Sequence record: PP885688.1
Direction: 5' to 3' (one strand)
DNA length: 64,000 nt
Shown: piece by piece, positions 45,156 to 60,879 of the stretch
Numbering within the stretch: the first letter of the stretch is position 1
Layout of the letters: each line of letters starts with the position of its first letter
Program-made: the position numbers and the translations under genes
Notes under the pieces: generated by a model
Databases searched by the model: none
What the model was told of the DNA's origin: nothing
What the model saw: the letters and a program-made list of their open reading frames with translations, nothing else

Positions 45156-45254
45156 ATGAAAACTTTGTGCCTCAGTTCGTATTGCCTCTCCTCTTCGCTA
45201 TCACTTAGCGACGGTTGGGACTTGCGCACTGGAAGAGACGCAGACATGATCTAA
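45156..45254 (+). CDS. Putative attenuator leader peptide 1 (MKTLCLSSYCLSSSLSLSDGWDLRTGRDADMI)
   Basis: Codons 4-18 are all Leu/Cys/Ser/Tyr, matching the downstream tRNAs; followed by a terminator. Confidence 0.8.
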   Translation: MKTLCLSSYCLSSSLSLSDGWDLRTGRDADMI

Positions 45255-45276
45255 GTCTTAGTAGCATCCAGGATTC

Positions 45277-45313
45277 GCAAAGCCCCAGCCAACCAGCTGG
45301 GGCTTTTGCTTTG
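45277..45313 (+). terminator. Attenuator terminator before tRNA array 1
   Basis: AAAGCCCCAGC-caacca-GCTGGGGCTTT plus T-tract ending just before tRNA-Leu; the 5' arm can alternatively pair with 45213-45226. Confidence 0.8.
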
Positions 45314-45314
45314 T

Positions 45315-45401
45315 GCGGGTGTGACGGAATTGGCAGACGAGACGGCCTCAAAAACCGTTGTCCACATGGGCGTGAGAGTTCGACCCTCTCCACCCGCACC
45401 A
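45315..45401 (+). tRNA. tRNA-Leu(CAA)
   Basis: Cloverleaf, long variable arm, encoded CCA. Confidence 0.9.
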
Positions 45402-45413
45402 CAAGTTTGAGAT

Positions 45414-45488
45414 GTCGCTGTAGCTAAGTGGTAAAGCGTCGGTCTGCAAAGCCGATCATCGGGAGTTCGACTCTCCCCAGCGACTCCA
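45414..45488 (+). tRNA. tRNA-Cys(GCA)
   Basis: Cloverleaf, U73, CCA. Confidence 0.93.
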
Positions 45489-45557
45489 CCGTTTTAGAGA
45501 TCAAGCTCAGGGGCTTGATTAGCACGAAATCAAGTCTTTTCGCTTGATCGCAACAAT

Positions 45558-45649
45558 GCCGGAGTGGCGAAATTTGGTAGACGCGCAACGTTGAGATCGT
45601 TGTGGTCAGTATTACGACCGTATGGGTTCGAGTCCCTTCTCCGGCACCA
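45558..45649 (+). tRNA. tRNA-Leu(GAG)
   Basis: CAACG-ttGAGat-CGTTG, long variable arm, CCA. Confidence 0.93.
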
Positions 45650-45668
45650 AAGCTTAGTAGCAAGATGT

Positions 45669-45747
45669 GCCCGAGTGGTCAAACTGGCAAAGGCGCTCCG
45701 CTCAGAACGGAGAGATTCTGTGGGTTCGAGTCCCACCTTGGGCACCA
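45669..45747 (+). tRNA. tRNA-Leu(CAG)
   Basis: CTCCG-ctCAGaa-CGGAG, reduced variable region, CCA. Confidence 0.9.
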
Positions 45748-45767
45748 ACAATTTACCGGAGTAGACA

Positions 45768-45995
45768 ATGGTCCCGACTATCAAGCAGATCGTGAAAGAC
45801 ACCACCGCGAAGTTCTCCTTCTACCGCACCGGCAACATGTTCTACACGGTCGAGGTATCCGGTGAGACGTTCCAGTTCCCAGTGTCCCTGGAGGACATCG
45901 GTAGCGCGACGCTGACTGCGGAGTTCAGGGCGATCACGTTGATGCGCTACGTCCGCAAGGCGCTCGCTGATGGGACGTTCGTCAAGGCGTCCTGA
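45768..45995 (+). CDS. Hypothetical protein (75 aa) inside tRNA array 1
   Basis: GGAG SD; clean ORF between tRNAs. Confidence 0.75.
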   Translation: MVPTIKQIVKDTTAKFSFYRTGNMFYTVEVSGETFQFPVSLEDIGSATLTAEFRAITLMRYVRKALADGTFVKAS

Positions 45996-46011
45996 AGTGT
46001 TGTAACAATGT

Positions 46012-46098
46012 GGGCGGATGTGTGAGTGGCTAAAACAGGCTGGCTGTAACCCAGCTCCTCTATGAGGTCCGTAGGTTCGAATCCTTCTCCGCCCACCA
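46012..46098 (+). tRNA. tRNA-Tyr(GTA)
   Basis: GCTGG-ctGTAac-CCAGC, long variable arm, CCA. Confidence 0.93.
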
Positions 46099-46111
46099 TA
46101 ATTTTTAGCAC

Positions 46112-46189
46112 GCCCCTGTGACGGGAATTGGCATACCTCCTCAACTTAAAATCGAGGGCTTGTCGGTTCGAGGCCGACTGGGGGCACCA
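46112..46189 (+). tRNA. tRNA-Leu(TAA), short variable loop
   Basis: Cloverleaf with 5-nt variable loop, A73, CCA. Confidence 0.85.
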
Positions 46190-46191
46190 AC

Positions 46192-46279
46192 GGAAGAGTG
46201 GGCGAGTGGTTTATGCCGTCACCCTGCTAAGGTGAAGCTCCTACGGGAGCCAAGAGTTCGAATCTCTTCTCTTCCGCCA
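46192..46279 (+). tRNA. tRNA-Ser(GCT)
   Basis: TCACC-ctGCTaa-GGTGA, long variable arm, G73, CCA. Confidence 0.93.
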
Positions 46280-46292
46280 TCAAGATTCACAT

Positions 46293-46387
46293 GGTGACGT
46301 GCACGAGTGGTTTATGTGACTGTCCTGGAAAGACAGCATCCCGGCCTATACCCGGGGTCGTGAGTTCAAATCTCACCGTCACCGCCA
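46293..46387 (+). tRNA. tRNA-Ser(GGA)
   Basis: CTGTC-ctGGAaa-GACAG, long variable arm, G73, CCA. Confidence 0.93.
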
Positions 46388-46388
46388 T

Positions 46389-46480
46389 GGAGGGTAGTGC
46401 AATGGTGCAAAGCGGTCTCGAAAACCGTCGTATGTCGGCCAACCCGGCATTACAGAGTTCGATTCTCTGGCCCTCCTCCA
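46389..46480 (+). tRNA. tRNA-Ser(CGA)
   Basis: GCGGT-ctCGAaa-ACCGT, long variable arm, CCA; unusual D arm and U73. Confidence 0.85.
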
Positions 46481-47134: not shown

Positions 47135-48583
47135 TTACTGCCCGTTATAGGGAAGAACGCCCGAGCCAGCAACGTTCATCACTACCTGCCAGGCCTCAGG
47201 CATGCGTGCAGCCACACCATTGGGCCCAACCAGCGGTTCTACCTTCTTATACGCGGCCACGATCTCATCCAGAACCCTAAGGGCCTGCTTGCGATCGCTT
47301 ATGTTGCCCTCCAGCTGCTCCGTGGCGACGTACTCCAAGGCATTGCGGAAGAACGGGCCCGGCTCAACGAAGCGTTCTATCAGATCCTTGCCGGTGACCA
47401 GCTTGACCGGGTGAAGGACATGCTCCGGCGTCTCCGCCAGCACCTTCTCACAGAACTCCGCGTTGTCCATCTTGCCGGATCCGGACGAGGCATCCAGTTT
47501 GTGGAGTGCGAGCAGCTCGGGGAAGAGAGGCTGACCGACGAACTTGAGCAGCTTGCTCTTCCGCATCTCCTGCGTCACACGAAACTTCATGTGCTGGCTG
47601 ACGAGCATGAAGACGACCTGCTTGAACGCGACAGGGAACTTCAGACGAGTGAGTATCTCCTCCGCCTTGCGAGCACCGACGTGTTCGTGATCGTAGAAGG
47701 TAGGCTGACCATCCTTCAGACCGCGCGTCGCGGGCTTGCCTACGTCATGCAGCAACGCAGCCCATGCCAGTGTCGGAGAACAACCGTACTCCAGCTGACG
47801 CATCAGGCCCATAGTGTGGACGTAGACGTCGCCCTCGGGATGATGCTTCGGGTTCTGCTCGCATCCGTGCAGCTCTAAGACCTCTGGCAGCAAGGCATGC
47901 ATAAGCTTGGTTTCTTCCAGCAAACCAAGACCGTAGACTGCATCTCCAGAGGTGAGTATGAGCGTCAGCTCGTCCCGTACGCGCTCGGTAGGCACGTTGA
48001 GGACATCAGCCCACAACTTCCCTATCGCACGGCGGGTAAGGGCCTCAAGCTTGAACTGCAGCTTGGCGCAAAAGCGTACAGCACGCAGCATCCGCAGCTT
48101 GTCCTCACGGAACCGCGTCTCTGGATCCCCGACACACCGCACTATCCCCTGTGCCAGATCGAGCCGGGCACCCAGGTGATCTATGACGTTGCCGTCGCGA
48201 TCCATGAGTAACGTGTTCATGACGAAGTCGCGGCGCTGGAGATCCTCAAGGACGTCAGTGGTGTAGGCCACACTGTCAGGGCGGCGTGAGTCTGAGTAGA
48301 CGCCATCGAGGCGGAAGGTCCCGACCTCGAAGACCTCGTCCTCGAACTCGACGCGGCTCACACCGAAGTTGTTGCCGACTAGTACAGACTTCGGGAACAG
48401 CTCGGCTATCTCCTCCGGCGTCGCTGAGGTGCTGAGGTCATAGTCGTGTATCGGGCGGCCAAGGACATAGTCCCGGACGCATCCGCCAACCAGGTACGCG
48501 TGATAGCCCGCATCGTTGAGCAAACCGACCAGCCGCAAAGGCTTCGGGTCAACCGGGGTTCGTTCGTTAGTCAAGTCCAACAT
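47135..48583 (-). CDS. cca: CCA-adding enzyme / tRNA nucleotidyltransferase with HD domain
   Basis: YLVGGCVRD..DYDLST, RRDF, EDKLRMLRAVRF, HPEGDVYVHT..LLHDVGK. Confidence 0.92.
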   Translation of the reverse strand: MLDLTNERTPVDPKPLRLVGLLNDAGYHAYLVGGCVRDYVLGRPIHDYDLSTSATPEEIAELFPKSVLVGNNFGVSRVEFEDEVFEVGTFRLDGVYSDSRRPDSVAYTTDVLEDLQRRDFVMNTLLMDRDGNVIDHLGARLDLAQGIVRCVGDPETRFREDKLRMLRAVRFCAKLQFKLEALTRRAIGKLWADVLNVPTERVRDELTLILTSGDAVYGLGLLEETKLMHALLPEVLELHGCEQNPKHHPEGDVYVHTMGLMRQLEYGCSPTLAWAALLHDVGKPATRGLKDGQPTFYDHEHVGARKAEEILTRLKFPVAFKQVVFMLVSQHMKFRVTQEMRKSKLLKFVGQPLFPELLALHKLDASSGSGKMDNAEFCEKVLAETPEHVLHPVKLVTGKDLIERFVEPGPFFRNALEYVATEQLEGNISDRKQALRVLDEIVAAYKKVEPLVGPNGVAARMPEAWQVVMNVAGSGVLPYNGQ

Positions 48584-52747: not shown

Positions 52748-53134
52748 ATGAACTTCAAGTCCGTACTCTACCTCGACGACATGCGCACCCCGATCGTCTT
52801 CGGCATCGACGTCGTCCGCAACTATGAGCAGTTCGTATGGCACCTGCAGAACAAGGAGATGCCGAAGCTGATCTCCTTCGACCATGATCTTTCAACCGAG
52901 CACTACCCGGTCTTCGAGAACAAGCCGGGCATGCAGATCCCCTACGACGCCTACAAGGAGAAGACCGGCCTACACGCGGCGAGGTACATCATCGAGAACA
53001 AGCTGCCGCTACAGTACTGGATGGTCCACTCGATGAATGTGCAGGGTCGACTCAACATCGAGGCTGAGCTTCGACGCTACTGTCCCCAGGGCGAGCTGCG
53101 CGGCGTCACGATCCCGTATCGCATCAAGGGATGA
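52748..53134 (+). CDS. Cyclic-phosphate-processing receiver domain protein
   Basis: LYLDDMRTP..VRNYEQF..ISFDHDL..TG..VHSMNVQG pattern. Confidence 0.8.
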   Translation: MNFKSVLYLDDMRTPIVFGIDVVRNYEQFVWHLQNKEMPKLISFDHDLSTEHYPVFENKPGMQIPYDAYKEKTGLHAARYIIENKLPLQYWMVHSMNVQGRLNIEAELRRYCPQGELRGVTIPYRIKG

Positions 53135-53221
53135 GTTTGTAACTCGATCTGAATTTATTTTCGGAATTCGATGAAACACTTTTCGAGAATCCGGGTCGAA
53201 GTAGTCACGAGGTTTTACTCC

Positions 53222-53335
53222 ATGCAACATGTATCCACATTCCGTTTCGCAGTCCCAGCCACCGCCGGTAATCCGGCAGGTCAGCAGGGTACGAACGCGT
53301 GCGATACAGGCGGGGGTAAGGTGGTCAAGTGGTAA
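53222..53335 (+). CDS. Putative attenuator leader peptide 2 (MQHVSTFRFAVPATAGNPAGQQGTNACDTGGGKVVKW)
   Basis: GAGG SD 9 nt upstream; codons 6-26 are 20/21 amino acids with tRNAs in array 2; followed by a terminator. Confidence 0.7.
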   Translation: MQHVSTFRFAVPATAGNPAGQQGTNACDTGGGKVVKW

Positions 53336-53355
53336 TTTGATCCCAAAGTTTTCAC

Positions 53356-53384
53356 AAGCCCCCAGCCTAAAGGCTGGGTTTTTT
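53356..53384 (+). terminator. Attenuator terminator before tRNA array 2
   Basis: CCCAGCC-taaa-GGCTGGG-TTTTTT; the 5' arm can alternatively pair with GGCGGGGG at 53309-53316. Confidence 0.8.
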
Positions 53385-53475
53385 GTTTGCAGTAAACAAG
53401 TTTCGAGAACTGACTTATACGTCAATTACAACGGGTTTCAGGCCCAAAATTGACGCATACATCAACTCTCAGTGT

Positions 53476-53552
53476 TCCGGAGTAGCTCAGTGGTAGTAGC
53501 GGCTGGGCTGTTAACCAGAAGGTCGGGGGTTCGATCCCCTCCTCCGGAGCCA
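53476..53552 (+). tRNA. tRNA-Asn(GTT), apparent 8-nt anticodon loop
   Basis: Cloverleaf, G73, CCA; CTGG-gctGTTaa-CCAG. Confidence 0.8.
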
Positions 53553-53628
53553 ACAAGTGTAGTAGCAACACCCGACGCTCCCAGGAGCACCATCGGGCCG
53601 GTGGATTTTTGACAACCGAAGTGCATGT

Positions 53629-53706
53629 TGGGGAGTAGCTCAAGTTGGTAGTAGCGCCTGACTCTGAATCAGGAGGTTAGAGGTTCGAGGCCTCTCTCCC
53701 CAACCA
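53629..53706 (+). tRNA. tRNA-Gln(CTG)
   Basis: CCTGA-ctCTGaa-TCAGG, CCA. Confidence 0.92.
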
Positions 53707-53724
53707 ACAAGTTTAGTTTCACGA

Positions 53725-53800
53725 TGGGCAGTGGAGTAATCGGTAGCTCACCTGACTTTGAATCAGGACGGCGTGGGTTCGAGCCCTACCTGCCCAACCA
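53725..53800 (+). tRNA. tRNA-Gln(TTG)
   Basis: CCTGA-ctTTGaa-TCAGG, CCA. Confidence 0.92.
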
Positions 53801-53820
53801 TCAACATTCTCTTTCCCAGC

Positions 53821-53913
53821 GTGCCAGCGTTGGACGGTAGAGAACCGGAGAGCGCAACAAGCCTCCGTGGAGCTGGCGAGTCCGACACCGTCCTGGTGTC
53901 CGGCCACACTCCA
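53821..53913 (+). ncRNA. Candidate pseudoknotted small RNA ending in CCA
   Basis: Crossing helices 53823-28/53872-77 and 53830-35/53880-85; hairpin GACACC/GGTGTC. Confidence 0.35.
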
Positions 53914-53917
53914 AAAT

Positions 53918-53992
53918 GCGGGATTAGCTCAGTGGTAGAGCGCAACCTTGCCAAGGTTGAGGTCGTGGGTTCGAGCCCCACATCCCGCTCCA
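53918..53992 (+). tRNA. tRNA-Gly(GCC)
   Basis: Canonical cloverleaf, U73, CCA. Confidence 0.95.
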
Positions 53993-53998
53993 ATTTCA

Positions 53999-54030
53999 AT
54001 ATTCACCCTCGTGACCACTTCCGAGGTATT
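53999..54030 (+). promoter_or_regulatory. Class B promoter-like motif (ATATTC-N19-AGGTATT) inside tRNA array 2
   Basis: ATATTCACCCT box also seen at 62800; conserved spacing. Confidence 0.65.
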
Positions 54031-54049
54031 AGCAAGTAGACATCAACAC

Positions 54050-54125
54050 GCCCGGGTAGCTCAGTGGTCAGAGCGCCTGCTTCGTAAGCAGAGGGTCGTC
54101 GGTTCAACTCCGACTCTGGGCTCCA
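54050..54125 (+). tRNA. tRNA-Thr(CGT)
   Basis: Cloverleaf, loop ttCGTaa, CCA. Confidence 0.92.
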
Positions 54126-54147
54126 ACTCGAACGAAAGGAGACTGTC

Positions 54148-54669
54148 ATGAGCAAGCTGATGAAGAGGCCGGTACTCGTACTCAACGCCTACTACGAGCC
54201 AATCAGTATCACCCCGGCGCAGAATGCCATGAAGCTCCTCGTCAAGGGTGTCGCTGACGACATCACGGAGCCAGAGCAAGACGCTCGCTTCGTTCACATC
54301 AATTTCAGACTGCCGAGCGTTGTCCGTCTGTCTCAGTACAGGCGCATCCCGTACCGGCATGTCATGCCTCACCGGCACAACATCATCCTTCGCGACGGCA
54401 ACACCTGCCAGTACTGCTACCAGGTGTTCCCAAGCATCCAGCTCACGATGGATCACGTCATCCCCCGTGCGCAAGGCGGTAAGTCGACCTGGGAGAACCT
54501 GGTCGCCGCATGCCAGCCCTGCAATGGATTGAAGGCTGACCGTACGCCGGAGCAGGCAGGTATGGAACTCCTCAGGGTGCCGAGGATGCTGTCGATCCAC
54601 ACCTCGCGGCACATGCTGCGGATGCTGGGTAGCACAGATCCGAACTGGAGGAAGTACCTGTACCACTAA
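54148..54669 (+). CDS. HNH endonuclease
   Basis: RDGNTCQYC..TMDHVIPRAQGGKSTWENLVAACQPCN..K. Confidence 0.92.
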   Translation: MSKLMKRPVLVLNAYYEPISITPAQNAMKLLVKGVADDITEPEQDARFVHINFRLPSVVRLSQYRRIPYRHVMPHRHNIILRDGNTCQYCYQVFPSIQLTMDHVIPRAQGGKSTWENLVAACQPCNGLKADRTPEQAGMELLRVPRMLSIHTSRHMLRMLGSTDPNWRKYLYH

Positions 54670-54676
54670 CTTCAAC

Positions 54677-54752
54677 GCCGCCGTAGCTCAGTTGGCAGAG
54701 CACTCCCTTGGTAAGGGAAAGGTCATCGGTTCGACTCCGATTGGTGGCTCCA
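54677..54752 (+). tRNA. tRNA-Thr(GGT)
   Basis: Cloverleaf, loop ttGGTaa, CCA. Confidence 0.93.
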
Positions 54753-54756
54753 TAAA

Positions 54757-55075
54757 TGTGGACTCTGGTTTGGTCCAGTCTAAAGACTCCGTACCTGGAA
54801 GCACTCCGGTGCTGCAGACGACGGGGCAGTCTCCTACGATCTGCCTGAAAGGAATCTGGTGAGCCTTGGCCCCAGTGACCGGGATGGTTGATGAGCATTG
54901 CGACCCATCGGACGCGAGCGGGAATCCGGCGATAACCGGAGATAGAAACACTCGTTTGTCTCGACCGTAGAACAGGGCGACACCTGCCCGGACGTAACCT
55001 CTGCGAAGAGGGTCATAAGCGCGATGATGGTCGCGACTGAGTCCAGTGGTGAATACCTCGGAGAGAGCTCCGGCA
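54757..55075 (+). ncRNA. Candidate large structured ncRNA (~300 nt)
   Basis: No convincing ORF; closing helix TGGACTC/GAGTCCA and at least 7 local hairpins, one with a GCGA tetraloop. Confidence 0.5.
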
Positions 55076-55094
55076 TAAAGTTTAGGAGAGTCGT

Positions 55095-55493
55095 ATGGCG
55101 AAGAAGAGTAAGGTCAGGATCCCACCACCCGCGCCCGCAATCGACCAGTGGTCGTTCCGCACCGCAACGGTCTGCTCCAGCTGCTTCAACAGCAAAGGTC
55201 ACGGTCAGGTATGCGATGGAAAGCCGCTTCGGTTCCTCTCCATCAACGATGTCACGGAGTACGAGACGAACGCAATGATTGCCCAGCTTCGTGAGGAGCT
55301 CAAGACGATCGGCCTCGACTACCTGGTTCACCCTGATCGTAAGGACGGACAGTACGCGCGGGCTTATGTAATTCTTCTCGGGGACCATGTTCCGTATCCG
55401 GAAGAGTTCGACAAGATCTTCCTCCGCGTGATGGAGCCAGACGATCCAGAGGATCTTCCCGTACGGGAACATGCTGGCATAGCTCAGTGGTAG
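55095..55493 (+). CDS. Hypothetical protein (132 aa) with CxxC; 3' end overlaps tRNA-Thr(TGT)
   Basis: AGGAG SD; stop codon 21 nt inside the tRNA. Confidence 0.7.
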   Translation: MAKKSKVRIPPPAPAIDQWSFRTATVCSSCFNSKGHGQVCDGKPLRFLSINDVTEYETNAMIAQLREELKTIGLDYLVHPDRKDGQYARAYVILLGDHVPYPEEFDKIFLRVMEPDDPEDLPVREHAGIAQW

Positions 55494-55547
55494 AGCGTCT
55501 GATTTGTAATCAGAGGGCCGGGGGTTCAAGTCCCTCTGTCAGCTCCA
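55473..55547 (+). tRNA. tRNA-Thr(TGT)
   Basis: TCTGA-ttTGTaa-TCAGA, CCA. Confidence 0.93.
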
Positions 55548-55605
55548 GTCGTTGACAGCGTAAAGTCCGTCAAGTCGAAGACGTAAAAACTTCGGCCAAG
55601 TTTGT

Positions 55606-55683
55606 CGAGGTGTAGCGCAGTCTGGTCAGCGCACTCCGTTTGGGGCGGAGGGGCCAGTGGTTCGAATCCACTCACCTCGACCA
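55606..55683 (+). tRNA. tRNA-Pro(TGG)
   Basis: C1:G72, A73, CTCCG-ttTGGgg-CGGAG. Confidence 0.94.
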
Positions 55684-55719
55684 TCAACATCGAACGCTGT
55701 GTCGTCGCGTTCAGCAAGC

Positions 55720-55798
55720 TGCGGGAATTGAGCTACAGTGCGCTCGCTGGTTTCATATGCCAGAACGTACCCGGTGCCAACTCCGGGTCCCGCAACCA
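55720..55798 (+). tRNA. Non-canonical tRNA(CAT) (Met- or Ile2-like)
   Basis: 7-bp acceptor, CAT anticodon, CCA; D loop lacks GG, T loop TGCCAACT. Confidence 0.65.
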
Positions 55799-55831
55799 AT
55801 CAGAACGCTGAGTCCGCCGCGTTCGTCAAGT

Positions 55832-55911
55832 GTGGTCGTGCTAACTGCGGGCATGTTAGAGCAGACTGTGAATCTGTCTTCTCGTGGGTCCGACTCCCAC
55901 CGACCACCCCA
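55832..55911 (+). tRNA. Non-canonical tRNA-His(GTG)
   Basis: GCAGA-ctGTGaa-TCTGT, C73, CCA; T loop TCCGACT; base -1 is T rather than G. Confidence 0.75.
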
Positions 55912-55988
55912 TGTAGTGATAACCGGTGCTTTCTTACCGGTTAGAAGCAAAAACCCTCGTAACCGGTGGAATTGTACCGCTTATAGAT

Positions 55989-56064
55989 GGGCCGTTAGCT
56001 CAGTTGGGAGAGCGCATTCATGGCATGAATGAGGTCAACGGTTCGAGCCCGTTACGGTCCACCA
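55989..56064 (+). tRNA. tRNA-Ala(GGC)
   Basis: G3:U70, CCA. Confidence 0.93.
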
Positions 56065-56293
56065 CTTTCAACGCACCTCGGAGGAAGCCATGTCACAGCG
56101 GGACGCTATTGGAGCTGTCCAGGATGTGGAGTAAGGCGCGACTTTGATCCGCGCAGCGAGTGTCGCTGCTACCGGTGCCAGGTCACGTTCGATGCGGACC
56201 AGCTCGTCCGCAGTCACCTAACCGGGAATGATGCGATCCCGTTCGGAGAGAAGCTCAATCGTCTCTTCGATCCCGACGCATGAAAAAGTTTTT

Positions 56294-56369
56294 GGGGCTG
56301 TAGCTTAGTTGGGAGAGCGCTTCGTTCGCAACGAAGAGGTCAACGGTTCGATCCCGTTCAGCTCCACCA
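56294..56369 (+). tRNA. tRNA-Ala(CGC)
   Basis: G3:U70, CTTCG-ttCGCaa-CGAAG, CCA. Confidence 0.93.
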
Positions 56370-56494
56370 CAAGTTTGTACAATTCCTGACTTTTGCACAC
56401 ATTAGTACAAGTCAGTGGAGGAAACAATGCGATGCGTAAAGAGACGTGGTGCAAGGGGGCCTATGCGTTAGGTGTCTAAAGGAACACCTACCGT

Positions 56495-56806
56495 ATGTGC
56501 ACTCAGAACTACTGGAAGGACATCGTTGAAACTCGCGATAGTCATGACTGGCCGGATTGGCCTGAAGATACTCGACGCAAGAGACGTTGGAAGCGCAGAC
56601 TCGGTCTCGAGATGGACTCACCCGAGTGGCTGGTCTGGAGAGTCACCTGTAAGCCTCCTGGTCCTGTCAACCGTGACTTCCGTCGTATCACACGCAACAC
56701 CATGAATCGCACCCTGCGCAACGCTATCGCGCACGGTGACGACTTCGAAGACCTCAACATCGAGTCCCGACCTTCCCGGCTGGAAGGGCGCGATCGGTGG
56801 TTCTAA
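56495..56806 (+). CDS. Basic Arg/Trp-rich hypothetical protein (103 aa)
   Basis: Most protein-like frame in the interval; start uncertain. Confidence 0.55.
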   Translation: MCTQNYWKDIVETRDSHDWPDWPEDTRRKRRWKRRLGLEMDSPEWLVWRVTCKPPGPVNRDFRRITRNTMNRTLRNAIAHGDDFEDLNIESRPSRLEGRDRWF

Positions 56807-56809
56807 TTT

Positions 56810-57085
56810 CGGCTCGACACTGGCTATCCCTGAAGGAATATTGCTGGACAGGGAGTGTAGTAAGGCGGTGTCCCCCTATATGTAAGGCCTGCGAAAGGGG
56901 CATGCGGCAACCCGGGGTTCGCCCCGGGACACATTGAGGTGAGCCCCCTAGTAGTCTCTGCCCGTCAAAGGCCGTCCACGGTCGTTGGGCATACGAATGG
57001 GAGTCCCCGTACCCCGGCTGTGGAACAGGCCGACGGTATCGCACGAGGGGAAGACCCGAGGCTCCGGCCTCGGGACACATTAGAA
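56810..57085 (+). ncRNA. Candidate structured ncRNA (~270 nt)
   Basis: No convincing ORF; UUCG-capped 7-bp hairpin; duplicated hairpin+GGGACACATT module. Confidence 0.45.
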
Positions 57086-57090
57086 AGATT

Positions 57091-57165
57091 GGGCGCGTAG
57101 TTCAGCGGGAGAACGTCTGCCTTGCACGCAGAATGTCGGGGGTTCGATCCCCTCCGCGTCCACCA
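57091..57165 (+). tRNA. tRNA-Ala(TGC)
   Basis: G3:U70, TCTGC-ctTGCac-GCAGA, CCA. Confidence 0.93.
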
Positions 57166-57291
57166 CAACATTCAACACAAGTGTCTCAGCGTGGAAACCG
57201 TCCGGCCTGTCGTGATCAGGTCGAAGCCGGATCAACGGTCCACGCGAGGCGATCAGCCGGGTAAGCCACACACGACTTCCCGAGCACCAAT

Positions 57292-57367
57292 GGCCCGTGT
57301 AGCTCACCGTTAGAGCGGCTGTCTGAAGAACAGCGCGTAGTGGGTTGAATTCCCATCCGGGCCACCA
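57292..57367 (+). tRNA. Divergent tRNA-Phe(GAA)
   Basis: GCTGT-ctGAAga-ACAGC, CCA; bulged acceptor stem, D loop without GG, T loop TTGAATT. Confidence 0.7.
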
Positions 57368-57380
57368 AATTCTCAAAACG

Positions 57381-57412
57381 ATAATCACCCTCGTGGCCTC
57401 CTCATGGGTATT
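57381..57412 (+). promoter_or_regulatory. Class B promoter-like motif (ATAATC-N19-GGGTATT)
   Basis: Exact consensus. Confidence 0.75.
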
Positions 57413-57425
57413 ACCCAGACAGGAG

Positions 57426-57698
57426 ATGTACATGAAGACACTTAAGAACGGACTAACGCTCCTCGCGCTAGTTGTCCTGCTCGGATGCACGGGATGCACC
57501 GGCGCAGCGAGATCAAACCTGGCGGCCTACGGGCAACAACACCACATCAAGCAGTTCAGCGGCGGTCAGTTGATCGGCGAGTGGGACTCGACGGGCATGG
57601 TCAGCAACGAAGAGCAGAGCGACGGCATTTACTTCCAAGACGCAGCCACCGACAAGAAGGTGGAAGTCACGGGCACCCTGCAGATCACGGTCAAATAA
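57426..57698 (+). CDS. Putative lipoprotein (90 aa)
   Basis: AGGAG SD; basic/hydrophobic N-terminus with LLGC lipobox-like site. Confidence 0.7.
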   Translation: MYMKTLKNGLTLLALVVLLGCTGCTGAARSNLAAYGQQHHIKQFSGGQLIGEWDSTGMVSNEEQSDGIYFQDAATDKKVEVTGTLQITVK

Positions 57699-57707
57699 AA
57701 AATTTCA

Positions 57708-57739
57708 ATAATCACCCTTGTCGACTCGGCGTGGGTATT
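57708..57739 (+). promoter_or_regulatory. Class B promoter-like motif upstream of rtcB
   Basis: ATAATCACCCT-..-GGGTATT with conserved spacing. Confidence 0.75.
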
Positions 57740-57761
57740 GACCCGGTAGAGGGCCAATACA

Positions 57762-58943
57762 ATGTCGATGCAGTTAGTTGATGGAATCATCCCAGTGTTC
57801 GGCGAAGCAGACGAGAACACTCTCACCCAGATCCGCACGTGCTTGAAGACCGCCGATAAGGTCGCACTGATGCCGGACAACCACCTTGGCTACGGAGTCC
57901 CAATCGGGGGCGTAGTCGCTTACAAGGACGCCATCAGTCCCACCGGCGTCGGATACGACATCGGCTGCGGCAACAAAGCAGTCCGGCTCGACATCAGCGG
58001 CGAAGAGCTCCGCAAGGGCATCTACCGCACGATGAACGAGGTCTGGTCCAAGGTCAGCTTCGGTGTAGGCCGGAAGAACGGCGAGAAGGTTGACCACGCT
58101 CTGTTCGATGACGACGCCTGGAAGTTGAAGGCGATCAGTGGACTGAAGGATAAGGCACGGGCGCAGCTCGGCACCGTAGGAAGCGGCAACCACTATGTGG
58201 ACCTCTTCATCGACGAGCTCGACCGGGTATGGTGTGGGGTCCACTTCGGATCTCGTGGCTTCGGTCACGGTGCCGCAACGTGGTTCCTCAAGGCAGCGGG
58301 AGCGTCGGACGGCATGATGGTGGAGCCTTGTGTTCTGCCGACGTCAGGCAACCTCGGTGCTGAGTATCTGGAGGCCATGCGTCTCGCCGGTGAGTACGCT
58401 TACGCCGGTCGTGACTGGGTCTGCCAGAAGGTCGCGGACATTCTGCGGGCGAACATTGTGGAGGTCATCCATAACCACCACAACTACGCTTGGAGAGAAA
58501 CCCACGGCGGAGAGGATTTCTGGGTCGTCCGTAAGGGCGCTACTCCAGCTTTCCCGGGACAGAAGGGCTTCGTCGGTGCCACCATGGGCGAGGAGTCAGT
58601 CATCCTCGAAGGGGTCGAGAACGAGAACGCGAAGTACTCTCTCTACTCGACGGTGCATGGTGCTGGTCGTGCAATAGGTCGCATGATGGCGAAGGGTATG
58701 GTCGACAAGAAGACGGGCGCTGTGAAGCGTGCTGGTCTGGTGTCGCCGGACATGATGAAGGGTTGGGTCGACAAGGCAGGCATCGAGTTGCGTGGTGCCG
58801 GTATCGACGAGTCGCCTGACTGCTACAAGCGTTTGGACGTGGTGCTCGATCACGTTGCGGACTCGGTCAAGATCTTGCACCGCCTGACTCCGGTCGGTGT
58901 TGCGATGGCCGGAAGCAACGAGTTCGATCCCTACAAGGACTAG
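57762..58943 (+). CDS. rtcB: RtcB-family RNA ligase
   Basis: MPDNH.GYG.PIG, GYDIGCG, GSGNHY, HFGSRG, HNHHN, VRKGAT, HGAGR, DESPDCYK. Confidence 0.95.
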   Translation: MSMQLVDGIIPVFGEADENTLTQIRTCLKTADKVALMPDNHLGYGVPIGGVVAYKDAISPTGVGYDIGCGNKAVRLDISGEELRKGIYRTMNEVWSKVSFGVGRKNGEKVDHALFDDDAWKLKAISGLKDKARAQLGTVGSGNHYVDLFIDELDRVWCGVHFGSRGFGHGAATWFLKAAGASDGMMVEPCVLPTSGNLGAEYLEAMRLAGEYAYAGRDWVCQKVADILRANIVEVIHNHHNYAWRETHGGEDFWVVRKGATPAFPGQKGFVGATMGEESVILEGVENENAKYSLYSTVHGAGRAIGRMMAKGMVDKKTGAVKRAGLVSPDMMKGWVDKAGIELRGAGIDESPDCYKRLDVVLDHVADSVKILHRLTPVGVAMAGSNEFDPYKD

Positions 58944-58990
58944 TAGTGAAGGCCCCGGGAATGCTAACACATTCCTGGGGCCAGCAAGAT

Positions 58991-59067
58991 CGGAATGTAG
59001 CGCAGCCTGGTAGCGCACTTGTTTCGGGAACAAGGGGTCGAGAGTTCGAATCTCTCCATTCCGACCA
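58991..59067 (+). tRNA. tRNA-Pro(CGG)
   Basis: C1:G72, A73, canonical cloverleaf. Confidence 0.95.
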
Positions 59068-59073
59068 TTCATC

Positions 59074-59155
59074 CCCTATGTAGCGCAGTGGTCAGCGTGC
59101 CAGCCACGGTAGCAGAGGCTGGAGGTCGTTCGTTCGAATCGAACCATTGGGGCCA
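59074..59155 (+). tRNA. tRNA-like RNA with an expanded (11-13 nt) anticodon loop
   Basis: Canonical acceptor, D and T arms and CCA; CCAGC-cacggtagcagag-GCTGG. Confidence 0.7.
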
Positions 59156-59171
59156 AGTTTATGAGGAGAGT

Positions 59172-59951
59172 ATGCACCACGTCATCCAAAACGATCTCTA
59201 CAACGAGCAAGGGTTCAACGCTCTGATGGATACGCTGACTGAGCTCGGCGCTCCGTTCACGGTAGTGAAGGTGATCCCGTTCGTTCATGAGCTGGAGCCG
59301 GACATCAACCTTGAAGGTGAGGTGATGGTTTGGGGCGCGACGACGTTAGGGCACATCTCCCGGCTCAAGGGTTGGACGCCAGGTGTGTTCAAGACCGATG
59401 AGTTCGATATGCGTGTGCTTCACGCACGGTACGGCGAGCACATGTTGAATAGTGACGCCGCCTTCTGCACGTTCTCAGAGCTCTCCTTTGAGGGAGTGAA
59501 GTTCGTTCGCCCAGTACACGACTCGAAGACCTTCACCGGCGCACTGGTCCACTCGGAAGAGATGGCTGCGTGGATTGAGAAGGTGCAGAGAGCGGAGAAC
59601 GATGGGTTCACGTCACTGGATAGTGACACGCCGGTGATGTACGCGGACCCGAAACAGATTCAGCTCGAAGCCCGCTACTTCGTAGTTGGTGGCAGGGTCA
59701 TCTCGGGCAGCACGTATCGGGTTCACGGGCGGTCCCAGAAGCACAATCTGGACAACAACCCAAACCTACGTGACCTGCAAGAGTTCGCCCAGTCAATGGT
59801 GGATCGCTGGAGCCCGGATCGGGCGTTCGTCATTGATGTGGCGATCACCGGCGACGATGAGTACAAGGTCGTTGAGATAAACGCATTGAACAACGCAGGC
59901 TTCTACGCCTGCAACATGGGAGCGGTCGTTCGCGCGATCGAATGTTTATGA
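59172..59951 (+). CDS. ATP-grasp domain protein (R2K/DUF4343-like)
   Basis: FVRP..DSKTFTG, EARYFVVGG..ISGSTY, FVIDVA..KVVEIN..NAGFY; GAGGAG SD before ATG 59172. Confidence 0.8.
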   Translation: MHHVIQNDLYNEQGFNALMDTLTELGAPFTVVKVIPFVHELEPDINLEGEVMVWGATTLGHISRLKGWTPGVFKTDEFDMRVLHARYGEHMLNSDAAFCTFSELSFEGVKFVRPVHDSKTFTGALVHSEEMAAWIEKVQRAENDGFTSLDSDTPVMYADPKQIQLEARYFVVGGRVISGSTYRVHGRSQKHNLDNNPNLRDLQEFAQSMVDRWSPDRAFVIDVAITGDDEYKVVEINALNNAGFYACNMGAVVRAIECL

Positions 59952-60325
59952 TCACAGCAAAGCAAGCACAAGCCGCAGCAGCCAAGAAGAAACGTGACGA
60001 AGCGAAAGCTGAACGCGCGAAGGTGAAGGAACGGGCTGATCGCCGCACCTCCGACCGCAAGTATGCAAAGACTCAGGTCCCTAGCGAGCTGGAGAAGATC
60101 GAGGCTCAGATCAAGGAAGCGATCGCTGCCGACGCGAAGGAGACACTTTACATCACGCGCGACAACTATGTTGGTGAGTGCCTCGTGGGGTGGCTCGTCC
60201 CCGCGCTCGTCAGGCTTGGATTCAAGGCTGAGCCGAAAGAGGTATATGTGCCAGGCGAGCGGGGCAGCTATGACGAACCGAGCTGGGACGCATACACGAG
60301 CCACCGCATCAGGATCGCGTGGTGA
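59948..60325 (+). CDS. Hypothetical protein (125 aa)
   Basis: ATGA-coupled to the ATP-grasp gene. Confidence 0.7.
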   Translation: MITAKQAQAAAAKKKRDEAKAERAKVKERADRRTSDRKYAKTQVPSELEKIEAQIKEAIAADAKETLYITRDNYVGECLVGWLVPALVRLGFKAEPKEVYVPGERGSYDEPSWDAYTSHRIRIAW

Positions 60326-60462
60326 GCAACGAGAAGTATCTGCCAACGGTGTTGATCGTCCTGCAGGTTGCCGCAGCGATCGTATACGCCTTTCACAAAG
60401 ACATGCGCCGCACAGTGTACTGGTTCTGCTGCGCAGCACTCACAGCATCGGTCACGTACTAG
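60322..60462 (+). CDS. Small two-TM membrane protein (46 aa)
   Basis: GTGA overlap; MSNEKYLPTVLIVLQVAAAIVYAFHKDMRRTVYWFCCAALTASVTY; not in ORF track. Confidence 0.65.
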   Translation: MSNEKYLPTVLIVLQVAAAIVYAFHKDMRRTVYWFCCAALTASVTY

Positions 60463-60470
60463 GAAATCGA

Positions 60471-60680
60471 ATGCACGCAGAGAAGAGATCAGGTCAGTTG
60501 AACGACGCCGGTGAGGCCGTCTACTTCGTCACAGCCGACGACGTTGTCCTTCTGGCCGGTAAAGTCGGAGTCGCCATCACAAAGAAGATCGCCGAAGAGT
60601 GGCTGAGAGATCCTAAGTCCCGCATCGAGCTCGAAGCTGCGATCGACGAACACATCAAGCACCGTATGCGGTGGTTGTAG
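60471..60680 (+). CDS. Hypothetical protein (69 aa)
   Basis: AGGA SD; 3' part of the 205-aa track ORF. Confidence 0.6.
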   Translation: MHAEKRSGQLNDAGEAVYFVTADDVVLLAGKVGVAITKKIAEEWLRDPKSRIELEAAIDEHIKHRMRWL

Positions 60681-60686
60681 CAACAT

Positions 60687-60764
60687 CCAAGGGTTTCAGT
60701 GGGAGGGCGGCGTGCATCTCGAGTGCACCGGTGCCGGAGCGTTCGATTCGCTCCCCTTGGGCCA
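60687..60764 (+). tRNA. Divergent tRNA-Arg(TCG)-like RNA
   Basis: Perfect acceptor CCAAGGG/CCCTTGG, T arm, GTGCA-tcTCGag-TGCAC, CCA; C at position 33, weak D arm. Confidence 0.55.
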
Positions 60765-60774
60765 AGTTTAGTTT

Positions 60775-60852
60775 CGGGATGTAGCGGAGCCTGGTTACCG
60801 CGCTAGTCTGGGGGACTAGAGATCGCTGGTTCGAATCCAGCCATCCCGACCA
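60775..60852 (+). tRNA. tRNA-Pro(GGG)
   Basis: C1:G72, A73, CTAGT-ctGGGgg-ACTAG. Confidence 0.93.
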
Positions 60853-60855
60853 CAC

Positions 60856-60879
60856 AAGCCACCTTCGGGTGGCTTTTTC
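60856..60879 (+). terminator. Intrinsic terminator ending tRNA array 2
   Basis: AAGCCACC-TTCG-GGTGGCTT-TTT. Confidence 0.85.

Follow-up and report, generated by a model that had tools for sequence, protein, structure and literature searches.

In the genome of Tunturiibacter phage Tunturi_5 (sequence record PP885688.1; 308,711 bp), a jumbo myovirus with an Arctic soil acidobacterium as its host, a block of 16 tRNA genes (array 2) is preceded by a short open reading frame (ORF), here called leader 2, and by a terminator. Leader 2 and this terminator almost certainly form a conserved and selected module that is matched to its array. The unit is probably a ribosome-mediated (leader-peptide) transcription attenuator gating the 16 tRNA genes together with RNA-repair genes. 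The whole stretch of DNA analysed, called the window, covers 64,000 nucleotides of the record, and a record position minus 186,000 gives the window position. A leader-peptide attenuator had been proposed for array 2 in a first-pass annotation of the same DNA, and this reading is supported by the repetition of the design, by conservation, by the modelled energetics of the RNA switch and by the spacing of the terminators.

The sequence contains the GAGG Shine-Dalgarno element and the 37-codon ORF at the coordinates assigned to them in that annotation. The stop codon TAA occupies 53333-53335. The terminator, a hairpin CCCAGCC-TAAA-GGCTGGG of -12.9 kcal/mol followed by U6, lies between leader 2 and array 2 and ends 97 nt before the tRNA-Asn gene. 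Codons 2-26 (53225-53299) are the proposed regulatory codons, and codons 6-26 read TFRFAVPATAGNPAGQQGTNA. The peptide is free of Leu and Tyr, as had been noticed, and the codons listed for it (ACA/ACC/ACG, GCA/GCC/GCG, CAA/CAG and CCA/CCG) are all found. The count of 20 out of 21 residues of codons 6-26 within the residue set drawn up earlier is correct. Arg does not belong in that set, since the Arg tRNAs of Tunturi_5 are in array 3, and the truly cognate residues are 19 out of 21. The tRNAs of array 2 cover eight amino acids (Asn, Gln, Gly, Thr, Pro, His, Ala and Phe) and not the ten assumed previously.

All eight amino acids occur in leader 2 and make up 25 of its 36 residues (P=0.0024 against 1254 short ATG ORFs from six frames of the whole genome). 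For the fraction and the presence of all eight amino acids taken jointly, with 40,000 random sampling windows as the null, P is 0.0005 with windows from real genes and 0.0002 with six-frame windows. At the codon level, 24 of the 36 codons are readable by array 2 tRNAs (P=0.008). A leader 2 codon exists for 14 of the 15 distinct array 2 anticodons (P=0.022), with only Pro(ggg) missing. The match of leader 2 to array 2 exceeds chance, P being about 0.0002-0.02 depending on the statistic. The previous caution that this match is weaker than the one at array 1 is fair for leader 2 taken alone. The tail of the peptide is non-cognate because it (ACA GGC GGG GGT) encodes the G-rich segment 2 of the RNA switch described below.

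A short ORF with a terminator precedes each of the three tRNA arrays of Tunturi_5. The parallel design suggested earlier for array 1 was found there, and the same layout occurs at array 3, outside the window. Leader 3 is a 49-codon ORF, MKQILKQLGHDFDIRGKRGVVVDTWDITIRGERKWSDVRDMRVLRERPV, with the terminator 31 nt later. It is annotated in GenBank as the hypothetical protein gp308, while leaders 1 and 2 are unannotated. The leader 1 antiterminator has an energy of -19.6 kcal/mol (P=0.003), and its terminator ends 8 nt (terminator-scan stem) or 5 nt (longer hairpin) before the tRNA-Leu gene at 45315. The cognate fraction of leader 1 is 0.52 for array 1, 0.16 for array 2 and 0.39 for array 3. The corresponding values are 0.06, 0.69 and 0.42 for leader 2 and 0.08, 0.23 and 0.77 for leader 3. 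The diagonal values have P of 0.004, 0.0024 and 0.0008 for leaders 1, 2 and 3, respectively, and the off-diagonal fractions lie in the range of 0.06-0.42. Each leader is enriched for the amino acids of its own array only, and every amino acid of an array occurs in its own leader. Genome-wide, about 12 units combine a short ATG ORF with a strong terminator, and two of them are leaders 2 and 3; leader 1 is absent from this list because its frame is open far upstream. Leader 1 also has CTA and TCA codons, for which the cognate Leu(tag) and Ser(tga) tRNAs are present in array 1 of related phages and were not found in Tunturi_5.

The module is retained in related phages. Scanning with gp291, the gene upstream of leader 2, matched one IMG/VR contig, and scans with the RNA ligase RtcB (gp296) matched two related IMG/VR contigs and about 50 soil and peat metagenome contigs with tRNA arrays. 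A viral-contig scan with gp307, the gene 5' of leader 3, revealed no relatives. The order of the arrays is kept in most of the related contigs: Leu.. Ser.. Tyr (Met) Asp Glu in array 1; Asn Gln Gln Gly Thr.. His Ala Phe Pro Arg(acg) in array 2; Trp (Met) Ile Lys Lys Arg x3 Val Thr(ggt) Ile Gly(tcc) in array 3. The leader 2 ORF stands 5' of tRNA-Asn in 27 related phage loci and encodes 14 distinct peptides (15 with that of Tunturi_5), such as MMNRVNHGFTPATAQPRQGVPM, MMFRAHHGFTPAAIQPTQQGNTVFRPD, MMNRAHTGQPTTPQAFGNPV and MMQQATTRFTVPANGNQPQAGTPAHLNGGLID. A terminator follows the ORF in every related locus examined for one. The automated unit finder misses GTG starts and some hairpins; the leaders were curated by hand. 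Leader 2 of Tunturi_5 aligns with the leader of the relative L009, including the segment 2 core CGGGGGT and the terminator.

In subfamily B of the relatives, leader 2 has a synonymous divergence (pS) of 0.24 and a nonsynonymous divergence (pN) of 0.023. The resulting pN/pS is 0.09, and the other two frames give 2.3 and 2.4. Judging from these ratios, purifying selection on leader 2 is strong and frame-specific in this subfamily. In each lineage leader 2 holds every amino acid of its own array 2, with a joint P of 0.0001-0.009 in the seven relative leaders tested. When leaders are assigned to arrays in the six phages with three units, the syntenic pairing scores best in every one of them. In the unrelated tRNA-rich phage L038, no ORF-plus-terminator unit of the leader design is evident.

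The content of the leaders also follows the arrays where these differ. In contig Ga0318573_10004460 (L087), arrays 2 and 3 are fused, with tRNA-Arg(acg) and tRNA-Trp 8 nt apart (minus strand, 745-904), leader 3 is absent and a single leader is located upstream of tRNA-Asn at 2444. This leader, MRTPIANHGFKPASVVAIVRTWKQGTAV, contains Ile, Lys, Val and Trp on top of the usual Asn, His, Gly, Phe, Pro, Thr and Gln, and its cognate fraction is 0.81 for the fused set versus 0.48 for the array 2 part. Subfamilies A and B and L010 have tRNA-Arg(acg) in array 2 and Arg in their leaders. In the two subfamilies, Asp and Glu occur in leader 1 where array 1 has the corresponding tRNAs. The Cys-rich core seen in leader 1 of Tunturi_5 and L008, two phages with tRNA-Cys in array 1, is missing from leader 1 of the two subfamilies. 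The Asp/Glu covariation is a trend only: L010 leader 1 has neither residue despite the Asp and Glu tRNAs of its array, and Tunturi_5 leader 1 has Asp in its tail. The leader tails are better explained as encoding the G-rich segment 2 than as Asp/Glu covariation.

In the folding models, the leader 2 RNA follows the classical 1:2 / 2:3 / 3:4 logic of attenuators. The fold of 53205-53390 reaches -68 kcal/mol (z=-3.6 versus shuffles). In its minimum free energy (MFE) structure, the full leader forms a long hairpin of the start region with GGCGGGGGUAA, a small stop-codon hairpin and the terminator, that is, 1:2 plus 3:4. The stop-codon hairpin (53320-53344) occurs in the terminator state and the antiterminator state alike. 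The start region of the full RNA pairs with GGCGGGGGU and the terminator forms; when the 5' half is masked, GGCGGGGGU pairs with the terminator 5' arm. For 53300-53378 alone, the MFE structure is the antiterminator, in which AGGCGGGGGU (53308-17) pairs with GCCCCC-A-GCCU (53358-68), with a total of -27.6 kcal/mol. The 2:3 duplex itself has -19.5 kcal/mol in RNAduplex (P=0.037 versus dinucleotide shuffles). The ribosome was simulated by masking all RNA 5' of its leading edge before folding. The predicted terminator probability was about 0-0.4 with the ribosome at codons 1-16. It rose to at least 0.84 for codons 17-20 and to about 0.99 between codon 27 and the stop, which places the simulated switch between codons 16 and 27. 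Masking of the footprint only, under equilibrium folding, produced an erratic profile in which the freed 5' region re-paired across the ribosome, and this variant was replaced.

The segments named in the first-pass annotation (CCGCC at 53262-66, GGCGGGGG at 53309-16, CCCCCAGCC at 53359-67, GGCTGGG at 53372-78 and T6 at 53379-84) are all located where they had been placed. The proposed alternation of 2:3 and 3:4 is borne out energetically for leader 2, and a family-wide swap test agrees with it. The assignment of CCGCC to segment 1 had to be changed. As a bare 1:2 duplex, CCGCC:GGCGG has -9.6 kcal/mol; the MFE structure pairs segment 2 with the start region 53215-53238 (-12.2 kcal/mol), and CCGCC is part of a local hairpin at the apex.

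The gap between the end of the terminator and the first tRNA is mostly 5-34 nt, except at leader 2 of subfamily B, L009 and Tunturi_5. Most units of leaders 1 and 3 show this close spacing, and so does leader 2 in subfamily A, L010, L087 and L146, where the gap is 8-20 nt. Because the terminator abuts the first tRNA in those units, there is no room for a separate promoter, and the tRNAs can be reached only via read-through. The terminators of those units would act as gates and not as operon ends. Antiterminator candidates are individually significant in 6 of 6 leader 1 units (P from <=0.003 to 0.023) and in 4 of 6 leader 2 lineages, and are mostly weaker in leader 3. In the swap test with 17 units, the upstream regions paired best with their own terminator arms: the mean energy was -19.4 kcal/mol with the own terminator arm versus -14.9 kcal/mol with a swapped one, and 0 of 20,000 permutations reached the observed value (P<5e-5). 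The antiterminator segments vary in sequence yet track their own terminator. Their positions range from about 46 nt upstream of the stop codon to 15 nt downstream of it. In units of leaders 2 and 3, most of them overlap or adjoin the stop and would be covered or blocked by a terminating ribosome. The leader 1 antiterminators of Tunturi_5 and L008 end 25-30 nt 5' of the stop. In the ribosome simulation of the relatives, three rows were artefacts of a wrongly picked hairpin; the duplex energies and the swap test were used instead.

In the relatives (L010, L074, L101 and others), a canonical promoter, TTGACW-N17/18-TAARKT, ends 7-9 nt before the conserved ATG ATG of leader 2, so the leader mRNA would be essentially leaderless. 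The region 53174-53205 of Tunturi_5 corresponds by eye to the canonical TTGACT-N17/18-TAAAGT promoter that L010 and subfamilies A and B have immediately before leader 2, and it may have a promoter function. In L008 and L009, all three leaders share another upstream motif, CGCAACTTT...ATTACGTCCAAG. A 16-nt direct repeat, AAACA(C/A)(T/G)TTTCGAGAA, flanks the leader-terminator module and has only two sites in the 309-kb genome. Between the terminator and tRNA-Asn there is additionally a 23-nt inverted repeat with the core TATACGTCAATT / AATTGACGCATA. The spacer repeats might represent a promoter that bypasses the leader, an operator, a hairpin for RNA processing or the scar of an insertion.

The attenuator would operate as follows. 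Transcription would start just upstream of leader 2, and the ribosome would load at GAGG/AUG 53222. Codons 2-26 would then sample Asn, Gln, Gly, Thr, Pro, His, Ala and Phe. If any of the charged tRNAs were scarce, the ribosome would stall in the first two thirds of the ORF, leaving segment 1 occupied and segment 2 free. Free segment 2 (53308-53317) would pair with 53358-53368, the terminator would be blocked and RNA polymerase would enter array 2. With plentiful tRNAs, the ribosome would reach UAA at 53333, between segments 2 and 3, and the hairpin 53361-53378 with U6 would terminate transcription. In an untranslated leader, segment 1 would pair with segment 2 and the terminator would form too. 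As the tRNA product would relieve the stall, the unit would provide negative feedback, with tRNA on demand. Three such units, one per array, would be present in Tunturi_5.

Several genes near leader 2 are related to RNA repair. The gene gp291 (52748-53134), called 'nudix hydrolase' in GenBank, matches the Pfam cyclic-phosphate processing receiver domain PF20274 cREC_REC (E=9e-18) and no Nudix family. The cRec domain has been linked to RNA ligases in jumbo phages by Iyer et al. (PMC7824862). RtcB (gp296; 57762-58943) is encoded in the operon behind leader 2, and the CCA-adding enzyme gp279 sits between arrays 1 and 2. With these three genes, the tRNA island resembles an RNA-repair island, and the gene context suggests tRNA damage as the natural trigger. 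A wider model for this widespread soil and peat jumbo phage family is offered tentatively, and it falls somewhat short of being favoured. The whole tRNA supply might pass through three multivalent attenuators that serve as demand sensors. A stall caused by a poor host tRNA pool, by phage-induced shut-off or by host anticodon nucleases would open the matching tRNA block together with RtcB. It would be the first example of tRNA genes that regulate themselves via the decoding of their own codons, and the whole would form a counter-defence circuit triggered by tRNA damage.

A number of observations weigh against the attenuator. The evidence is all computational, and the sigma-70 scan called no promoter upstream of leader 2. 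In Tunturi_5, a second promoter that escapes attenuation is possible, as a 16-nt piece of the region upstream of leader 2 recurs in the 97-nt spacer. Taken alone, the codon-level match of leader 2 has moderate significance only (P=0.008-0.02). No array 2 tRNA serves the Arg, Val, Ser, Cys, Asp, Lys and Trp codons of the ORF, and Pro(ggg) has no leader codon. Leader 2 contains one to six codons per amino acid, which are scattered, unlike the runs of classic attenuators, and the sensitivity to a single tRNA may therefore be low. In subfamily B, the Gly codons of the leader run opposite to the Gly tRNA of the array (Gly(gcc) / Gly(tcc)). Strict matching of codons, as claimed initially, fails in this case, and the matching holds at the amino-acid level. 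In subfamily A, leader 2 has a pN/pS of 0.78, no antiterminator is significant and one variant has drifted to non-cognate residues (14 of 26 cognate). Furthermore, the terminators of the relatives (-19 to -25 kcal/mol) mostly win at equilibrium at every ribosome position. A switch in these phages would have to be kinetic. The trp attenuator of Escherichia coli is likewise kinetic.

The dominance of the relatives' terminators whatever the ribosome position, and the lack of a significant antiterminator in subfamily A, could also arise if the ORF is translated and the terminator is real while stall-dependent antitermination does not take place. The unit would then be a fixed leaky valve, would affect RNA processing or stability, or would encode a functional peptide. 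The peptide cores NHGFTPA..QP..QG and RMTKRVIWGVV, kept as sequences beyond composition, and the conservation of some non-cognate residues, e.g. Val in RF.VPA, agree with this. However, a fixed valve or functional peptide leaves unexplained why three leaders hold the amino acids of their own arrays and why leader content tracks differing or fused arrays. The covariation of the upstream segments with the terminator 5' arms and the placement of these segments at the stop codon are not accounted for either. This alternative is unlikely, and it survives better than the two others considered.

It is very improbable that the hairpin merely ends the gp291 operon, with the array 2 promoter in the 97-nt spacer and with the ORF and its composition coincidental. 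Such an arrangement would fit the second copy of the 16-nt upstream element in the spacer and the position of gp291, which ends 88 nt upstream with no terminator between. However, the ORF is kept in 27 loci, with the low pN/pS of subfamily B, and leader 2 of the relatives has its own canonical promoter close to the ATG ATG. The terminator lies directly before the first tRNA in subfamily A, L010, L087 and L146, the gp291 homologue is not beside leader 2 in L008/L009, and the composition (P ~0.0002-0.0005) has a match that recurs at two more arrays. The operon-end explanation fails for the family; a promoter in the spacer may be an extra feature of Tunturi_5. A protein-independent RNA sensor with an irrelevant ORF, i.e. 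a T-box-like or other riboswitch for tRNA or a metabolite, is scarcely credible: the leader is structured (z=-3.6) ahead of a terminator and T-boxes too sense tRNA charging, but a cmscan of 53100-53480 at E<=10 gave three chance-level hits only, with no T-box and no amino-acid leader (Thr/His/Leu/Trp models), the signal is in the reading frame (frame-specific purifying selection, amino-acid composition), and one leader would need to sense eight tRNAs.

The features of the leader units and of the tRNA arrays are collected in Table 1.

Table 1. Positions of the leader units, tRNA arrays and associated elements of Tunturi_5 (window positions unless stated otherwise).
Feature	Position	Strand	Basis
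Promoter-like region, including the first 16-nt repeat copy AAACACTTTTCGAGAA (53174-53189) and ..GTCGAAGTAGTC	53174..53205	+	alignment to the L009 promoter region
Shine-Dalgarno GAGG, 9 nt 5' of ATG	53209..53212	+	sequence
Leader 2 ORF, 37 codons + TAA, MQHVSTFRFAVPATAGNPAGQQGTNACDTGGGKVVKW	53222..53335	+	sequence, composition, homologues
Segment 1 (translation start region and first codons), partner 53299-53319 in untranslated RNA	53215..53238	+	MFE helices
Segment 2, AGGCGGGGGU (codons 29-32), partner segment 1 or terminator 5' arm	53308..53317	+	RNAduplex, MFE, masking
Small hairpin, stop codon in loop	53320..53344	+	MFE structure
Segment 3 GCCCCCAGCCU (53358-53368), terminator hairpin 53361-53378, U6 53379-53384	53358..53384	+	terminator scan
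Spacer: second 16-nt repeat copy 53394-53409; 23-nt inverted repeat 53405-53427 / 53448-53470	53394..53470	+	repeat search
tRNA array 2: 16 tRNAs, Asn, Gln x2, Gly gcc, Thr x3, Pro x4, His, Ala x3, Phe	53476..60852	+	ARAGORN, GenBank annotation
Terminator closing array 2, 4 nt past tRNA-Pro(ggg)	60856..60875	+	terminator scan
Leader 1 unit, ORF MKTLCLSSYCLSSSLSLSDGWDLRTGRDADMI 45156-45254, antiterminator 45212-45227, terminator 45277-45309	45156..45309	+	terminator scan, duplex energy
tRNA array 1: Leu x4, Cys, Tyr, Ser x3	45315..46480	+	ARAGORN
Leader 3 unit, 5' of array 3	L002 1573-1772 = record 251573-251772 (outside window)		

The GenBank feature table of PP885688.1 lists CDS only and no tRNA genes. 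Within the window, 25 tRNAs in two blocks were found by ARAGORN. Array 3 is located in the rest of the genome (record 251837-255899) and comprises Trp, Asp, Met x2, Lys x2, Val x2, Arg x4, Glu x2, Ile and Gly(tcc). All tRNAs of Tunturi_5 fall into the three arrays, one call aside: an extra tRNA-Leu, placed at 47758-47848 of locus L003, falls within an annotated CDS of the opposite strand and is probably a false call. The paper describing Tunturi_5 reports 43 tRNA genes and does not mention the leaders (PMC11924767). The genes among the array 2 tRNAs include an HNH endonuclease, the RtcB ligase and a RimK-like protein. Array 2 begins with a tRNA (53476-53552) that is identified as tRNA-Asn(GTT) from its similarity to the tRNA-Asn genes of other phages. 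ARAGORN labels it 'tRNA-???' because the anticodon loop comprises 8 nt (GCUGUUAA); the L009 homologue has a normal loop of 7 nt. A 138-aa ORF on the minus strand (53009-53425), antisense to gp291 and leader 2 and without a Pfam match, was treated as spurious.

Leu, Ser and Tyr tRNAs are the three bacterial tRNA types with long variable arms, and array 1 groups them together with Cys. Within this array, gp277 (45768-45995) encodes a 75-aa ORF (MVPTIKQIVKD...), which is kept between the Ser tRNAs in related metagenomic phages. The 13-mer TTGACAACCGAAG has two copies only in the genome, at 53609-53621 and at L002 1814-1826, each about 20 nt 5' of a tRNA (tRNA-Gln ctg in the window and tRNA-Trp in L002). 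The window copy is directly 3' of a hairpin with a T-run (53590-53608).

In bacteria, tRNA genes are generally described as being expressed constitutively or under growth-rate control, and the reason for the large tRNA sets of phages is still debated. If the attenuator reading is true, the phage gauges the decoding capacity of the infected cell per codon family and tops it up on need. A textbook mechanism would thereby reach a new class of targets, with the product feeding back on its own sensor. The presence of RtcB and the cRec protein in the same island would link tRNA supply to RNA repair. Since Tunturi_5 and its host, Tunturiibacter psychrotolerans X4BP1, are in culture, the question of supply versus defence is testable. 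Unannotated leader ORFs before viral tRNA arrays are worth seeking in other large phages, and the leader design could serve synthetic biology as a compact sensor of tRNA availability.

The classical leader-peptide attenuators, such as trpL, hisL, leuL and pheL and the multivalent thrL and ilvL, precede biosynthetic operons. Leader 2 is similar to them in having a short ORF with regulatory codons before an intrinsic terminator, an antiterminator that overlaps the terminator 5' arm, segment 2 by the stop codon, and 1:2 plus 3:4 pairing in the untranslated RNA. As in thrL and ilvL, several amino acids would be sensed together. Unlike the classical systems, the phage units would regulate tRNA genes (with RtcB and others) and not biosynthetic enzymes, and their product would act on the decoding of its own leader. 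Furthermore, the phage leaders sample from 4 to 9 amino acids, mostly by one to few scattered codons instead of runs. They are phage-borne, have no Rfam leader match and occur in three copies that partition the tRNA set. The pheST attenuator with the pheM leader controls the phenylalanyl-tRNA synthetase of E. coli. This system resembles the phage units as a leader-peptide attenuator that acts on a component of the translation machinery and responds to charged tRNA. However, pheST controls a synthetase, senses one amino acid and is cellular rather than viral. T-boxes also act by attenuation that responds to tRNA status, and have translation-related targets, but they bind uncharged tRNA directly without translation, while the phage signal lies in a selected reading frame. 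The general principle of leader-peptide attenuation has been described (PMC1183508).

In mycobacteria, leaderless polycysteine short ORFs are presented in a preprint as Cys-responsive attenuators of genes in the same operon (bioRxiv 10.1101/834739). As described there, they share with leader 2 of the Tunturi_5 relatives the arrangement of a short regulatory ORF on a leaderless mRNA; they differ in being bacterial and in responding to a single amino acid (Cys), and leader 2 of Tunturi_5 itself has a 5' untranslated region with a Shine-Dalgarno element. According to their abstracts, phage tRNA sets act as replacement or counter-defence tRNAs (eLife 2023, PMC10264068), and the rtcBA repair operon is induced by damaged tRNAs through RtcR, a transcriptional activator with a CARF-type domain (PMC7790460). 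Phage tRNAs or RtcB are thus tied to the loss or damage of host tRNA, and the leader 2 operon has both. By contrast, the two abstracts contain no leader-peptide sensor before tRNA genes, and the RtcR sensor is a protein. Full-text literature searches found no description of leader-peptide control of tRNA genes. Ribosome-mediated attenuation is a known mechanism; its application to tRNA gene arrays, in three matched copies and across a phage family, would be new.

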